Below are positions 5,853-52,610 of a DNA stretch of 64,000 bases, piece after piece. Made by a program: the position numbers and the translations under genes. This stretch comes from Podarcis filfolensis (taxonomy: Eukaryota): the NCBI GenBank assembly GCA_964270895.1, contig OZ185444.1; one strand, given 5' to 3'. Each line of letters starts with the position of its first letter. The stretch's first letter is position 1. The notes under the pieces were generated by a model. That model was not told the origin of the DNA and ran no database searches. It saw only the letters and a list, made by a program, of their open reading frames with translations.

Positions 5853-6609
5853 CTGTAATGTAGTTGAACACCAAAATTAAAGAATTCAGACATTTTCATT
5901 TTAAAAAAAGTCAGTTTAGGGTAAGGGGAACTTTAATTCTTAAATTCTTGGACATATTTCAGCATTTGGGGAATATTAACTTTTACATCTAGGATGTTAA
6001 AAACCTAACAGCAGCACTATCTTTATAAAATTCAGCAGCTGATCAACCAAGTTCTATTTTCAAGAACCAAATGTATCTTTAGAAATGAAATGCCAGGATG
6101 AAGGGCATTATTCTGAAGGTACTTTCAACAGAATGTGAAAGCATGCACAGTTCTCCAAGCATCCTCCCTGAAATTGACGATTATGTATCACAAGCAGAAC
6201 AAAGGAAACCTTAAACAGAACTATATATAACTGAAGAGAGATTAAAGGGTGTAATGTCAATTGTGTAGAACTATTCGTTTTAATGATCAAATGATTGCAA
6301 TTATACAGATATATCAGAATGCTGATAATGAGTTAGCCGTTTTCACACATGCTTGTCCCAATGCCTCCTTTCACACAGACACAACTACTTTGCCATGTTT
6401 TCACACTATGCACTTCTGGGCTCTGAACAAATCACACAACTATATGGGGTGAAGGCTCATATGGGTTATTCCCTCTGTACCCAGCTGGAGGATGACTGTC
6501 ACCCCTGTAATTCTTGAGTGCCCAAGAATCAAATAGATTCAAATGTCTATTGTTGTTGTTAAATTCATTGTTATTGTTAAATCAAACTTTGTAAGGGTAC
6601 AACACTTAC

Positions 6610-6781
6610 TTGCTGTCATCACGGGTTGTGGCTGCCCCATGGGCCCCTGACTGATAGGAGCTGGTGGCATGACTGGGGCATTTGGTATCATATTCTGCCT
6701 TTGTAGCCTGGTCCTCCTCTTTTCCTCCAGTTCCTTCTGGATCTTATAAATTTTCTCTGCTAATAAGTGGTAGTACTCTGC
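6610..6781 (-). CDS. EP300: EP300 exon 10 (172 nt), KIX helix 3, AEYYHLLAEKIYKIQKELEEKRRTRLQ...
   Basis: Canonical KIX sequence; acceptor ttgcag|GCAGAG, donor ACAGCAA|gtaagt. Confidence 0.98.
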
Positions 6782-8336
6782 CTGCAATGAGAAAAGTATA
6801 TGAGATGCATACATAAGGAAAGCTTACAATATGCATATTTCCAGTCCACCCGAGACTGAAGGAATCCTCCAGCTACACCATATTAAGTTGTAATCTTTTT
6901 TTCCTGCACAGAAAATAGTGGCCACATTCTCATTAGAATTTCATTTTAATCCATACTAGTAAAATGCTGATCCTTGTGATGGATGGTATACACACATAGA
7001 AGGTTGCCCTTCATACTGTACTGACCTAGAAAGGGGGAGTGGGGAGAATGTGACTGGGGTCCCCATCAGTAGAGGCCAGGATACTTTGAAGTATCAGGGA
7101 GTGGTCTTGCACATGTAAGCCCAGGAAATCAAGATTCAGTGCCTTACTTCCTATGGCAAAACTGTTCAATTTACACTTCAAGTCTGGCAGATTGTGTTCC
7201 GTAATTCAAGGGCATCATCTAGGCTGCAGTTCTAGGTTGCCTGAGCATTCAGTCAGCTGACCACAAGTACAAGTATCTAGTCAGCAGGCCCTATAAAATA
7301 CTAGCCTCAAAAGTTTACTCCTTATTCCAAGTAACTCATCACTGGAATGAGCCTACACCAGAATGATATTTTGCTAATATTCTTTGTTTGTAGCTTTGGA
7401 ACTCAGCCTCTGCCTCCTGCTTCAACTGACAGACAGCACTCTACTAGGTCCCAGAATACAAGGTCTCAGAGTCTGTCCTTTGCATGCAAATACCCAGTGT
7501 CTGGCATGGTGGGCAGGTTTGGCCATAAGGCAACATTGTCCCAACTGCAGCACTTCATTACTGGAGTAAATGGACAAAAGCAAAGGAGTATAACCAGGAG
7601 AACTACTGAAATGGGGGCTAGTTTCTTGGTCAGAGCAGGTTTCATTCCTCACATTTGCTAAATACTATCCTATTTATATGAGGTATAGCAGGAACTGCTC
7701 AGAACCAGGGCTTTGTCACCCCAATCTGGCTTCTGTTTCTTGGTGAAAATAGCAGCAGTGGGGAACCTCTGGCCCACAGTCCAAACCAGAGTTTCATATT
7801 TGGCCTGCAAAGCAGTTTTCCCCAAAGTATGTCATATATGACATCAGGTGTGGGGTAGGTAGAGATGCAGCTGTCAATGCAGCTGTTGATACACAACTCT
7901 GAGCCTGAAAGGGTGCCACTGACTGTGTCCTGGCAGGGAAAGCAGACTTTGCCTCTACAAAGCTAAAGCTTCAAACACTTTAAAGCACTGTGCAGGGCTC
8001 TTTGCAATGATGCCATTCTGACATCCAGTGATTGACAGGAATCTAGAAACAAAGCTAGCATCTACTAGGGATCTGGCTTGCAAAGCCTAAAATGTTTCCT
8101 ACTCCTAAAATAGAATATGTTTGAATCCTTGGAACTTGCTTCAGAGAAAATTGGAATTTGCTACAAATGATGATTCATTAGTATTACTGAAGCATTCCTT
8201 CCAAATACTTATTATATATACATACAATGGAAAAGAACATGACTGGCTTTTGATCAACGTAATTATAGAAATGACAAAAAGACAAATTAATTTATAAATT
8301 AATACTTTGATACCAGAAAATTACAAAATAACTTAC

Positions 8337-32120: not shown

Positions 32121-32779
32121 CTTGCCCATTGCTCCAGGCTGTGGACCCCTCAAGCCTGTCTGTCCTCCCATCTGCGGAGAACCTTGCTGCAATGTCTCAG
32201 CCAACAAGTTACCAGCATTACCCATTCCTGGGTTCGAGTATGACATGTTGGAACGTCCTCTTCCTGCTCCAATCGAACCATTCAAAACTTGCCCCTGCAT
32301 CATGCCTTGTCCATTTCCTGAAGCCAACATACCAGGATTCATGCCAGCATTTATTCCTGCATTCATTCCCATTCCAGGCTGATTTACCGGATTGTTCACT
32401 GCTGGCATCATTCCTGCAGTGGGTTGAGTAGACGGACCTTGATTTGGTCCACTTGCACCCATCCCCAAATTTGGAGATGTCAATGCTGCCTGTGCCATAG
32501 GGCTTTTGACCATACTGTTTAAGATTCCCATTCCTGGATTGTTCTGCTGGGGCTGGCTGGCCATGCCCTGACCTGGCCCACCAACTCCCATATTAAGGTT
32601 TGGTGAGCTACCAGCACGTAACAGTTCAGACAACTGTTTGTGTTTTGAAGCAGCATCTTGTGCCATACCAAGACTAGTCTGCAGCTGATTAATGTCACCA
32701 CCATTGGTAAGTCCCAATTCTGTGGAGCTGATCAGTTCATCTGGTAAGTCATGTTCCAGATCAAACAGGGATCCAAAAT
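32121..32779 (-). CDS. EP300: EP300 exon 2 (659 nt), (D)FGSLFDLEHDLPDELI...KHKQLSELLR...GRGR...QPGAMGK
   Basis: Acceptor tttccctag|ATTTTG, donor GGCAAG|gtaaga, phase 1 to 0; contains the LSELL LxxLL motif. Confidence 0.98.
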
Positions 32780-47800: not shown

Positions 47801-48664
47801 TTGCATTCTACAGTGATTTAGTTCCCTGAACTTCTAAAACAACCAGTAAACGTTTGTTACCAAATGAACACCTGTAACTTGCATCCATAATTTCTAAGGA
47901 GTTCTAGAGTTCTAACTAGCTGGCTTTTACGAACCTCAAGAAATATCATATTAAAATACAGACAGAAGAGTTCAGAATAGTTGTACTCATCCTCACACAT
48001 GCAGAGAGACTATATGGGAATTTCAGACATTTTGGTCTCAAAGCAAGGAAGTAGAAGATGCAAAAGAAAAAGGTGGCTCCATAGTTTCTCAAGGCAAATC
48101 AGGTGAACTATTTAACAAAATGTCAAGACAAACATTATTCGCCAATTAATATTACGACTCTTGACCAAACAGAAATGTTGGCATTTAAGAACGCTTTGTG
48201 GTTATGAAAGAAATGGTGGAGGAAACAAACTATCCATCATAATACTGCTCAGAGAAAAAAAAATTTCAAGACTGAATGCCTCATCTTTAAAAAGCAAGAT
48301 TTTACAAAAATCAGGACTCTACATGCACAAAAATGTAGATAACAGTTGTGTAATGATTTACACTATAACTAGAGTTTAGGATTGTTGGTGTTTTTTTAAC
48401 AAAGGTTTCATTTGCTGCAGAACAGTGAAACGGGCAAGCAAGTAACACAGACATGCTTATAGCCCCTTCAATGAAAGGGCAGCAGCAGCAATTAAACACC
48501 CAATGTGATTAATGCAGCAAGGTGCAGAGAAAAGTAGGTACACAGAAAGGCAAAAAGAGAGAGTATAAGAAGGGTACTAGACAACAGACTGTGCAAAACA
48601 TGGGGACATTCAAGAGGAAAGGAAGGGACCCATATGCAGTGAGGTAAAAGCAAGAGAGACTGAC

Positions 48665-48758
48665 CTGTGCCATCGCTTGCAGAGACAGAGAGCGCCGGTG
48701 AGGAGAGTTTAGGCCTCTTGGCTGAAGGCGGGCCCGACTCCACCACATTCTCGGCCAT
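48665..48758 (-). CDS. EP300: EP300 coding part of exon 1 (94 nt), MAENVVESGPPSAKRPKLSSPALSVSASDGT(D)
   Basis: Start context GAATTAAAAATGGCC, in-frame TAA 5 codons upstream, donor GCACAG|gtcagt; NLS-like AKRPK. Confidence 0.98.
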
Positions 48759-50275
48759 TTTTAATTCTTTTTAGACAAACAGAGCCCAAATTAAAGATGG
48801 GGTTCGTCAAAGTCGTCAGCCTTCTTCTTGGATCCGGAATCAACCGAACAACAGTAAGAGAAGGAACTGAAGAAGAAAGGGACAAAGTTCCTCTTTTTCT
48901 GCCCCTCGGGATCTATCTCTGTTGGGTAGCAGCGACTAAGGGGGAACAGAGATGGGAAATAGGGTGTGGAAGCAGTCTTTCCTCCGGCCCACAGGGAAAA
49001 ACAAGGATGAAAAGAACAGAACAAACCCTTCTCCAAACACAAATATGCGGGGTTGGTGGGTTTACAAATCGAATTAAATCCGGCTGTGGGGCTGCTGGTG
49101 CTTCCTCGCCGCCGCCAACACCACCATCTTCATCCTCCGGGGGGTCGTCGTCTTCTCCTCCTCCTGCTGCCTCTTCGCCGCCGCCATCAACCTCTTCCTC
49201 CTCGGCGTCGTCCTCCTCCTCCTCATCGCCACAAGGAGGCGGGCGAAGGAGGAGAGGAGAAAAAAAGGAGAAAGAATCTCTCTCCTCTGCTCGCAGTTCC
49301 TTCCCTCTCCTTCCAAAAACCAGCTTGCAATGCGGGGGGGGGGGGGGAGAGAAATGCCCACTGCTAGTGGAAAAGGGACTGGGGAAGGGGGTCACAGACG
49401 GAGCGTGTCGAGGGTCCCCAACTCCCCCTGCGCCTTTCTCGCCAGTCACTAATGGCTGCAGAAAGGGGAGCCGTAAGGAGGAGGAGGAGGATGAAGCTAA
49501 GTCCCAGGAGTCTCCGCTTCACATCTTGTTGTGCAGGAACAAGGAGGCGGAGGAGGGGTTGTTGTCCCGATGGAGGCAGCAGAGATCCCGGGATGGGGGC
49601 TGGAGAGGGTGGGCTTCAGGACTCGCACCCCGCGCCCCCACCTTTTCTTCCTTTCTTTCTCTGTAGCAGGGTGCCCCCCTTCTGGTCAGATGGAGGGATC
49701 GATCCCAGAGCAGGAGGAGGAGAAAGCAGCGGCGGCGGCCCCTCCCCCCCTTCTCTCTGCCTCTTCCCCCTCCCTGGGGGATAAGGATGGTTGCGAGCGC
49801 TTGGTCTGCGGAGAGGACAAGACTCTCCTCGGAACCGAAGACGCGATGCCTCAGGCGTTCCTGGAGCGGCTCCGTCTCATGTCCGCCATGTAGGACCTGG
49901 GGAAGAGGGAAGGGGGGGCGCAGAGAAAAGAAACAGCTTTCCAAACCGGAGCCAGGCGGCCTCCTGACCCCGCGAACGGGCTCAGTAGCCAGGAGAGGCT
50001 GTGGGTGGGGTCCACCCGGGGTCCCGAGTCACTAGCCGAAGCCGGCAGTGCGTACTCCCCTACTGGCTGCGAGGCTGGGGTAGGGGGTGTATCACGGAGG
50101 TTTCGGGTTCCCTCAGGTCTGGCCGGCCAGGGGCCCTGAGCGGCTGTCGGTCTCTGTCGTTGCTTTTCCACCTCCCAGGCTCTACCCGCCCAGCTCGGTC
50201 CCTCTCGTTCGCTCCCTCCCCTCAGTCGCTCACACACAAACAAAATGGCGGCTGTTGTTTCTTCACTCTCCCGAT
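48759..50275 (-). other. EP300: Putative long EP300 5' leader (~1.5 kb)
   Basis: Blocks GAAGAAACAACAGCCGCCATTTTGTTTGTGTG and CGCCTCCTTGTGGCGATGAG...GAGGTTGATGGCGGCGGCG resemble the human EP300 leader as recalled; the exact TSS is not observable. Confidence 0.6.
49074..49226 (-). CDS. Candidate upstream ORF, 50 aa, MRRRRTTPRRKRLMAAAKRQQEEEKTTTPRRMKMVVLAAARKHQQPHSRI
   Basis: ATG in GTGGCGATGA (G at -3), three further in-frame ATGs, TAA at 49076-49074. Translation not demonstrated. Confidence 0.5.
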   Translation of the reverse strand: MRRRRTTPRRKRLMAAAKRQQEEEKTTTPRRMKMVVLAAARKHQQPHSRI

Positions 50276-50830
50276 TCCTCAGAGGGAAGCGAGCGGCGGC
50301 GGCCGGAAATGAGCCAAGAGAAAAAAGGGGCGTGGCCAGAAAAAGGAGAGGCGGGGACGCACGCAGCTCGCACACACAATGGAACGCGGAGGGCCGAGGA
50401 GGGGGAGAACCCGAGGCGGGGTCAGCTGCGGTCACGAGACTTGCTCAGCCACTCGCCTTGCGCTCCCGGAGCGATCCCTTCCGCAAACTCTCTCGCCTCC
50501 GCCTCTTAAAGGGGAAGGAGAAGCTGCTCGCCCGCTTCCCTCCGCCTTTACTTGTGTTTTCTGTCGGCCAAAATAGACCGCGAGGTTGCTGCTTGGGACA
50601 GGCCTATTGTAATGGGGGAAGGGGGGGGGGCGCTGAGCTTGTGTACTCTGGACCTGGCATTGCCCACGATACGCATCGGAAGCCCTCCGTAGGAAGACAG
50701 GCCCTGGCTCCTCGCTTCCCTCCTTTGCTGCTGCAAAGACAGCGGCCCAGAGTCACAGCCGAGGGGTGGTTTGGTGGGGGGCGGCGGAAGAGAGCAGGGT
50801 TTGGCCGGCCTTCTAGCTTCTCATGTACGG
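49080..50830. promoter_or_regulatory. CpG island over the EP300 promoter and leader
   Basis: Sharp rise in GC and CpG against the AT-rich, CpG-poor intron 1. Confidence 0.9.
50241..50425. promoter_or_regulatory. Core promoter motifs: YY1-like CAAAATGGCGGC (50241-50252), ETS-like CCGGAAAT (~50303), GC boxes (~50328, ~50349, ~50413)
   Basis: Motif matches by eye; no TATA box seen; consistent with a housekeeping CpG-island promoter. Confidence 0.6.
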
Positions 50831-52610
50831 TGCAGGCACACACACACCGATGTGATGAGGACGACGACTCAGGGTGTACGTGCACATATAGACATAGGAC
50901 ATGAGCCGTAACCTGTGATAGTATGAGAACAAAATCACCACACAGCCTCAAGGTGGAGGCGCAGAGGTCTTTTTATCAAGCGATCTTGCACAATTGCATT
51001 TTCCTGCCAGCATCCATGTCTTTTCCTCGTAAAGAAGGAAAATTCACTGCGGGGGGAGGGCTTTATTACGCGAAAAGACGTGGGGTAGCATTGTGCTGGG
51101 ACCGATACGTATTCCCTGTAATGCCGCGAGTCTGGTTTATAACGCTACGCCTATGTTTTTATCGTGATTTGCCACCGCGCTCTTTCGTACAAGAATCCAT
51201 AATGCTCTCTTAAGGCAGGGATGGGGTGGGGGATCACAGTAAAGTAATGTATAGACTAGGAGAGCCTTCCGTCGTTCGGTATGTTGTGTGTATACACATG
51301 AGCCTTTCTCTGCAGACCCCCGGGAGAAACAGCAGCACCTTCCTCACATATTCCTTTGTAAAACGTAGAGAAGCGAGAGGGTTCCGTGTTCTTTCCTTTC
51401 CCTCTTCGTAGGAGAGATGAACAATCAGTTCACAAGACCACTGGACACATGGCTTGCTTTTTCTAGCTTGCTTTTTTATAAGTGCCTGTAGGAAACGCCT
51501 CACCTGAGCAGCGCACATACTGTAATATGGAATGCCTGCTACGTTCACTTTTCCAAGGGTTTTCTGGTCTGTGCTTGCGACAGACAGTTCTGTTAGTCCG
51601 TTCATCACAATAATTGTTTTATTAAGGTTAAAAGGACAGAGCAAATCAGAGCATTCCACCACTTGTGTGAATTGGTCTTTATATGACACTTGTAGTGGAC
51701 TGGACTACTAAAAGTGATCCATAAGGTTACTTACGATATAGTGACATAGAAGGGTTGTAAAATCCAGGCAACTGTGGCCCGGACCTAGTTGCTGAAAAGG
51801 ACAGGAAGGTACGTCTCTCCTCGGGTATGTGCTACTACACAGAACACCGAAGGACAGCAGGATTGTGGAATACCACTGCTGTCTCTTGCTCCTTTTGTCT
51901 GTGCTTCTTTCCCCATCCCAGTTATTTCTCTCAAGCCTATTTTCAGTGAAGCTCAACTTACGTTGCTCTCAAACTTTTATGGAGATGTGTGAGCAGCACA
52001 AGCAGGAGCCAGAAAATCATCTTCAGTAAGAGGGAAGATACAGAGACAAACCCAAGCAAGAATACTGACACATCACTCCCTTTCGGTCTAGTCCTAGTAC
52101 AGCTTGCAGGTCCTAAATTTTCTGTTTCGTTTAATGTATCTGCTGCTTTTCCACAGTGGACTGTGCCCAAAGCAGCTCACAATAAGCACCAGATAACAGA
52201 AAAGACCATTAAAACAATTCACAACAAATTTAAATAAGGGGGAAATGAACCATTCTTCCTCAAATTATTTTGCATGCAAAAAATAATGTCCATCTTCATA
52301 GACAGTTCCTTAAATGTGTTTGTGGGTGTACCAAATAGAAAGACTTGTGAAAACTTATCTCCTGCCAAAGTCCTATGGTCACCATCCATTGACTGTTCTT
52401 CTGAAGAATGTCGGGATATCAGAAAGTTTTGTCAAAAGTATTTGCGCTCTTGGTAATCCACTGTCTGTGAAGCATTCAACTGATCTCATAATTAGGAAAA
52501 AATAATACCTGGTCTGCTTCACCCAAACTGCACAAAACTTTAGCACACCAGACAGTAAAACAGTGGTACATTATGGCACAGTAAAAGAATACTACCATAC
52601 CTGGGCTTGG

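Follow-up and report, generated by a model that had tools for sequence, protein, structure and literature searches.

On the minus strand of a 64,000-nucleotide (nt) stretch of the Podarcis filfolensis genome (contig OZ185444.1, assembly GCA_964270895.1; hereafter the window), the EP300 gene is preceded by a leader that holds an upstream open reading frame (uORF) with four in-frame ATGs. We propose that this is a regulatory, multi-AUG uORF in a long and apparently structured leader, and that it would act through the sites at which ribosomes start and stop rather than through its product. We give this reading, which is drawn from sequence comparison, a probability of about one half. The map of the uORF, its conservation among sauropsids and the conserved blocks that surround it had no counterpart in the literature searched, whereas conserved regulatory uORFs as a class, and EP300 as a gene with a uORF-bearing, eIF4G2-dependent leader, were already known. 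The elements on which the argument rests are the following:

49074..49226, minus strand: uORF of 50 codons plus TAA (ATG at 49226, stop at 49076..49074)
48759..49073, minus strand: ATG-free spacer of 315 nt, from the uORF stop to the EP300 start
49519..49524, minus strand: start-stop mini-uORF AUG-UGA (A at -3), which falls within the conserved block 49541..49492
48665..48758, minus strand: coding part of EP300 exon 1, 31 codons plus 1 nt (start context TTAAAAATGG, donor GT at 48664)
32779..32121, minus strand: match to EP300 exon 2, from a sequence match with exon 2 searched alone

The uORF is AUG-initiated, with an upstream AUG (uAUG) and an in-frame stop ahead of the main start. Its product, MRRRRTTPRRKRLMAAAKRQQEEEKTTTPRRMKMVVLAAARKHQQPHSRI, has 50 amino acids (aa) and opens with MRRRRTTPRRKRLMAAA. 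The four ATGs at 49226, 49187, 49133 and 49127 (AUG1 to AUG4 in what follows) share a single frame. AUG4 stands in an optimal context, with A at -3 and G at +4, and the contexts of the other uORF AUGs are mostly partial. Below position 49880, the sole other ATG upstream of the EP300 start is that of the start-stop element, ATGTGA at 49524. The main ATG at 48758 opens the EP300 protein with MAENVVESGPPSAKRPKLSSPALSVSASDGT, and the exon 2 match is 87-88% identical to bird-like matches and 76% identical to a cobra model.

Orthologous leaders were reached through the translation of a 289-aa antisense open reading frame (ORF; 48797..49666), which led to eight gene calls in public assemblies whose contigs were then fetched. 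The loci compared belong to close relatives (L001/L002, L003 and L004), to birds (L005-L008) and to a budgerigar chromosome on which EP300 is annotated adjacent (L009). These eight fetched loci (L001-L009) amount to seven distinct sequences, which gives low power for codon tests. A word search limited to the conserved antisense segment yielded no further taxa.

The uORF is present in every fetched sauropsid leader, with 50, 57, 50 and 50 codons in the reptile group and 47 in birds. Its N-terminus reads MRRRRT(T/A)PRRKRLMAA in all sauropsid loci (birds carry MRRRRTAPRRKRLMAAV), its start context GTGGCGATGAGG is identical across all loci, and its TAA stands at the same aligned position in all of them. 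AUG1, AUG2 and AUG3 are kept together with their frame in 8/8 fetched loci, each inside a conserved block, and birds have gained extra in-frame AUGs. From the start-stop to the main AUG, every locus is free of out-of-frame ATGs. The start-stop AUGUGA itself is identical in 9/9 sauropsid leaders (the window plus the eight fetched loci). The spacer is ATG-free in every species at lengths of 312-415 nt, with only 28% of its columns invariant. The initial annotation had described four ATGs in one frame, a TAA at 49074 and a 315-nt ATG-free stretch, and had judged the N-terminus of the peptide to be apparently conserved. The anatomy was confirmed in full on the minus strand, and conservation extends over the first 16-17 residues, the start, the frame and the stop position in every fetched sauropsid leader.

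In the window the uORF is in frame with the EP300 ORF. This relation is accidental because the frame of the uORF relative to the main ORF differs among species (0, 2 and 1). The two birds whose contigs include the main ATG have the uORF in frames 2 and 1, and on this ground we rejected an N-terminal extension of EP300 via the uORF.

Further upstream, the window carries an additional short uORF, MADMRRSRSRNA (49851..49889, minus strand, ATGs at 49889 and 49880), which also occurs in the close relative L001. L003 and L004 have one short uORF of different sequence (MVERRRGRC...) near this position, and the region is unalignable in birds.

To map conservation along the leader, we scanned six full-length sauropsid leaders for stretches that are at least 88% invariant. 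The blocks found, and a predicted hairpin that overlaps one of them, are as follows:

49597..49571, minus strand: conserved non-coding block
49541..49492, minus strand: conserved block with the start-stop AUG-UGA (45/50 columns invariant in the six full-length leaders)
49257..49177, minus strand: block straddling AUG1 and holding AUG1 and AUG2 (74/81 columns invariant in six sauropsids)
49146..49122, minus strand: second uORF block, holding AUG3 and AUG4
48775..48688, minus strand: block over the Kozak context and the coding sequence
49190..49260, minus strand: predicted hairpin of about -38 kcal/mol that has AUG1 at its apex and pairs the pyrimidine tract with the opening (AGG)n of the uORF

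The non-coding blocks make up ~22% of the leader, yet they contain all of the uAUGs (5/5). The block at AUG1 consists of a 31-nt upstream pyrimidine tract and the first 50 nt of the uORF, and it ends at codon 17; its invariance (74/81 columns) is on a par with that of the EP300 coding exon (82/94 columns). Between the blocks the leader drifts, as do the spacer and the last two thirds of the peptide. Selection seems to be visible on the uAUGs and their flanking bases, and not on the peptide.

Under the proposed mechanism, scanning ribosomes would first meet the start-stop AUG-UGA at 49524, which may itself be a ribosome-pausing element. They would next meet the four in-frame AUGs, where a ribosome leaking past one would be caught by the next, and all four starts would lead to termination at the common UAA (49074). 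EP300 synthesis would then fall mostly to ribosomes that go on scanning and initiate again after crossing the 315-nt AUG-free spacer. The output of p300 would consequently hinge on helicase activity and on how readily ribosomes reinitiate (eIF4G2/DAP5, ternary complex). We infer for this purpose that the uORF lies within the mature mRNA, is translated and gates or represses the main ORF.

This mechanism fits what has been published on the gene. The preprint of Weber et al. (10.1101/2021.01.21.427569) lists EP300 as a DAP5-dependent reinitiation target whose leader is long and structured. In mouse intestinal organoids, loss of eIF4G2 lowered the footprints on the Ep300 coding sequence, raised those on its 5' untranslated region (5'UTR) and reduced p300 protein (10.1101/2025.05.19.652834). 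The gene is the same, and the uORFs, the predicted stable hairpin and the AUG-free spacer described here would give such dependence. The window shows a leader of probably ~1.5 kb, the uORFs and the predicted hairpin of -38 kcal/mol; the dependence itself comes from the literature on human and mouse EP300. The two papers neither name nor map this uORF, and they deal with human and mouse, whereas our data are sauropsid and consist of sequence only. Published work on the eIF4G2/DAP5 dependence does not name the responsible leader elements; with candidates now mapped, the mechanism is directly testable.

Several points weigh against a gating role for the uORF. The depletion of ATGs in the spacer is modest: the ATG-free state has P ~0.02 against dinucleotide shuffles in the window (3.0 ATGs expected), P of 0.01-0.02 in related reptiles and P of 0.18-0.24 in two birds. 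Survival of the ORF is within neutral expectation, as 39% of the simulations with 39 random changes were left without a premature stop. With 47-57 codons, the uORF is long for efficient reinitiation. The block at AUG1 may be conserved for a reason other than initiation, and the position of the transcription start site (TSS) is one that we infer from the promoter-like element described below. The mouse study stresses near-cognate codons, not AUGs, in the Ep300 leader (10.1101/2025.05.19.652834). Finally, neither a homologous uORF nor an alignable leader was found in one frog contig (Nanorana parkeri KN909735.1, L010).

The extent of the transcript was judged from one further feature, which lies 1,026 nt upstream of AUG1:

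50229..50311, minus strand: promoter-like element, with an ETS-like motif CATTTCCGG (50311..50303) and a YY1-like motif GCCGCCATTTTG (50252..50241)

All reptile loci that extend this far carry the element, as does the budgerigar, and a 36-nt part of it (50264..50229) is unchanged in the budgerigar and the frog contig. A TSS near the element would place the uORF 1,026 nt into a leader of ~1.5 kb. The position of the uORF inside the leader is supported because an ETS/YY1 element conserved as far as frog sits at this distance upstream. Reckoned from this element, the leader would measure ~1.5 kb in the window, compared with 1.8 kb for the budgerigar and 0.7 kb for the frog.

The alternative is that transcription of EP300 begins mostly within the CpG island, at points downstream of at least some of the four AUGs, so that the ORF would stand outside the dominant mRNA. 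The island spans ~49000-50950, which makes dispersed initiation plausible. For the human EP300 reference transcript, leader lengths of ~1.2 kb and of ~0.4 kb have both been stated. We nevertheless consider the alternative quite unlikely. The promoter-like element, ~1 kb upstream of the uORF, has been conserved across reptiles, the budgerigar and the frog, the depletion of ATGs and the conserved uAUG contexts are what is expected of scanned RNA, and the mouse and human studies call the EP300 leader long and uORF-bearing.

A different question is whether the product of the uORF is under selection. Purifying selection on the peptide is expected to leave a clear excess of variation at third codon positions. 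The variable alignment columns are distributed as 15/11/10 over codon positions 1/2/3. We also computed the ratio of non-synonymous to synonymous differences per site (pN/pS) by the Nei-Gojobori method in the three sense frames. For the uORF frame, the ratio is 1.0-1.7 for the window and L003 versus birds, 0.43 for L001 versus the budgerigar and 0.4-0.6 among reptiles. The other frames give similar values over the uORF (0.3-1.35 in frame +1, 0.4-1.3 in frame +2), and neither of these two alternative sense frames shows a codon-level signal. By comparison, the 31 codons of EP300 exon 1, located 315 nt beyond the uORF stop, have a pN/pS of ~0.05-0.1, with 0.24-0.32 synonymous differences per site between reptiles and birds. 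Divergence of the uORF between the window and birds, at ~0.10 differences per site, is below the exon 1 synonymous rate of 0.24-0.28, a point in favor of the gating reading.

Within codons 1-17, the reptile-bird differences are ACG>GCG, TTG>CTG and GCG>GTG, only one of which is synonymous. Invariant columns make up 90% of codons 1-17 and 50% of codons 18-50. All pairwise gap runs in the uORF are multiples of three (5/5, versus ~26% elsewhere in the leader), and every indel lies inside a GCG/GCA, CAG/GAG or ACG run. Such indels need no selection, because slippage in triplet runs yields multiples of three. A Pfam search with the uORF peptide returned no match.

These results bear on the possibility that the polybasic peptide is itself functional. 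It would then work in cis as a nascent chain, slowing or stalling the ribosome that makes it, or be released to act as a microprotein in the nucleus or nucleolus. In its specific form, MRRRRT-PRRKRL would slow the ribosome after a start at the hairpin-tip AUG, or would be released as a micropeptide from EP300 mRNA; in the nascent-chain version, a ribosome queue would tune how many ribosomes reach EP300. We regard both the general and the specific form as very unlikely. Within each group, reptile or bird, the first 16 residues do not vary, and between the groups only position 7 differs (T/A). Length changes occur only in threes, and several of the later replacements are conservative (K/R, V/M/L). 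Nevertheless, there is no synonymous excess, the pN/pS of 0.4-1.7 is matched by the other frames, and two of the three differences in codons 1-17 are non-synonymous. The 31 nt upstream of the start are equally conserved, so the N-terminal identity need not concern amino acids. If RNA structure and peptide were under dual constraint, nucleotide-level conservation would not argue against the peptide. The C-terminal part, which is usually conserved in known arrest peptides, is variable here, and a text search of 8.4 million papers did not find the peptide string.

Seen as a candidate conserved-peptide uORF (CPuORF), the uORF has its least conserved part (codons 18-50) where a conserved C-terminal, tunnel-proximal segment would be looked for, and amino-acid purifying selection was not detected among seven distinct sequences, a sample of low power. 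The initial annotation had offered the uORF as a conserved peptide, as a source of a nuclear microprotein and as a regulator of p300 dosage through reinitiation. The sauropsid sample shows no frame-specific constraint of the kind that the conserved peptide calls for (15/11/10 by codon position, with the uORF ratios far from the ~0.05-0.1 of exon 1). The microprotein is disfavoured, as there is no codon-level signature and conservation begins 31 nt before the AUG. Control of dosage by reinitiation fits the DAP5/eIF4G2 literature on EP300 and is retained in our proposal, without support for the version that depends on the peptide.

The same observations raise the possibility that the ORF is a by-product of an element acting at the nucleotide level. 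The block 49257..49177 could then be an RNA hairpin, a purine-rich (GGA/AGG)n tract that forms a G-quadruplex or binds protein, or a CpG-island DNA element. The frame would follow from composition, as a T-poor stretch with G at every third base hardly acquires stops or out-of-frame ATGs. We hold this explanation, including its account of the frame, to be possible though somewhat unlikely. It agrees with conservation that begins 31 nt before the AUG and stops inside the ORF at codon 17, with third codon positions that are no more variable than the others, with a pN/pS of ~1 versus birds and with the confinement of all indels to GCG, CAG or ACG runs, in which slippage adds or removes whole triplets.

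Composition adds to this agreement. Third codon positions of the uORF are G in 43/50 cases, and of the 27 triplets that a single change would turn into ATG, 24 are in the uORF frame. For these two reasons, the sharing of one frame by four ATGs is not an independent signal. A length of 50 codons is unremarkable for a T-poor stretch, in which stops are rare for that very reason, and frame +2 is likewise open across the uORF. Over all neutral simulations, the ORF stayed open in 39-66% of runs. The uORF is in this respect a cautionary case, as a seemingly conserved peptide lacks a codon-level signature and the ATGs in one frame are an effect of period-3 G.

The period-3 G pattern at 49074..49226 (minus strand) persists in all species (39-44 G). 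Its source is a series of adjacent AGG, GCG, ACG, CAG and GAG triplet runs that have stayed in phase for roughly 250 million years or more.

The predicted hairpin of -38 kcal/mol is a further point in favor of a nucleotide-level element, but it is no more stable than shuffled sequence of the same composition (z of -0.7 in the window and -1.9 in the budgerigar). Its paired columns are invariant and therefore provide no covarying pair, and no evidence from covariation either way. A scan of the hairpin against Rfam gave only weak, sub-threshold matches to hairpin models, with nothing near gathering scores and hence no family at threshold. A nucleotide-level element also leaves unexplained the small block 49146..49122, which is centred on the AUG3/AUG4 pair, the location of the start-stop AUG within a conserved block as well, and the fact that birds gained ATGs only in frame while the poorly conserved spacer stayed ATG-free. 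Such an element is compatible with a translated uORF and not exclusive of it, so it can hold jointly with the translational gating that we favor.

With gating by start and stop sites as the preferred reading, the EP300 leader can be compared with known systems. As in the delayed-reinitiation leaders of GCN4 and ATF4, uORFs are followed by an AUG-free stretch that must be crossed before reinitiation at the main start. The permissive uORFs in those genes have ~3-4 codons, whereas the EP300 uORF has 47-57 codons and several starts, and the EP300 leader has no overlapping inhibitory uORF. Conserved-peptide uORFs, such as AMD1 MAGDIS, the fungal arginine attenuator peptide and the CPuORFs of Takahashi et al. 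(PMC7530721), resemble the EP300 uORF, which starts with an AUG and has kept its N-terminal residues for ~250 million years or more. In those uORFs the amino-acid constraint is usually strongest near the C-terminus; here it is nucleotides that are constrained, from upstream of the AUG and less and less toward the C-terminal end. EP300 is absent from the main text of that survey (PMC7530721). In the literature that we searched, the EP300 uORF is not named, nor are its sauropsid conservation and the surrounding blocks.

The candidates mapped in the EP300 leader are the start-stop, the four-AUG uORF with AUG1 at the apex of the predicted hairpin, and the AUG-free spacer. EP300 is dosage-sensitive: Rubinstein-Taybi syndrome type 2 results from its haploinsufficiency, and in the mouse the combined dose of Crebbp and Ep300 affects development. 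Our map suggests that variants creating, destroying or shifting uAUGs could alter the p300 dose. NIPBL offers a parallel, as it is also a dosage-sensitive chromatin regulator with a long uORF-bearing leader, and 5'UTR variants that affect its leader uORFs cause Cornelia de Lange syndrome (PMC12267970). The evidence for NIPBL is human genetic evidence, whereas none was found for EP300 in the searched literature. The parallel makes EP300 5'UTR variants a plausible disease mechanism.

Two further ORFs overlap the leader, and we rejected both as genes. The 178-aa ORF in the GNN frame (48913..49449) has no Pfam domain above threshold and no codon-level signal. The 289-aa antisense ORF (48797..49666, plus strand) likewise has no Pfam domain above threshold. 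The latter is Ser/Pro-rich, a by-product of composition, and its budgerigar counterpart (P0128 on L009, named 'translation initiation factor IF-2-like' by NCBI) is very likely a spurious gene model. An exact look-up of three window ORFs in a protein collection found no entry.

The frog contig aligns with the window over the exon 1 coding part and the promoter-like element alone. Its 698-nt EP300-like leader carries some ten ATGs, spread over several frames, just before the main ATG (6230..7030) and has no related uORF, a comparison that is limited by the question of orthology and by a possible leader intron. An AG-ending, pyrimidine-rich site ~30 nt ahead of the frog main ATG suggests that the frog leader has an intron or a different organisation.

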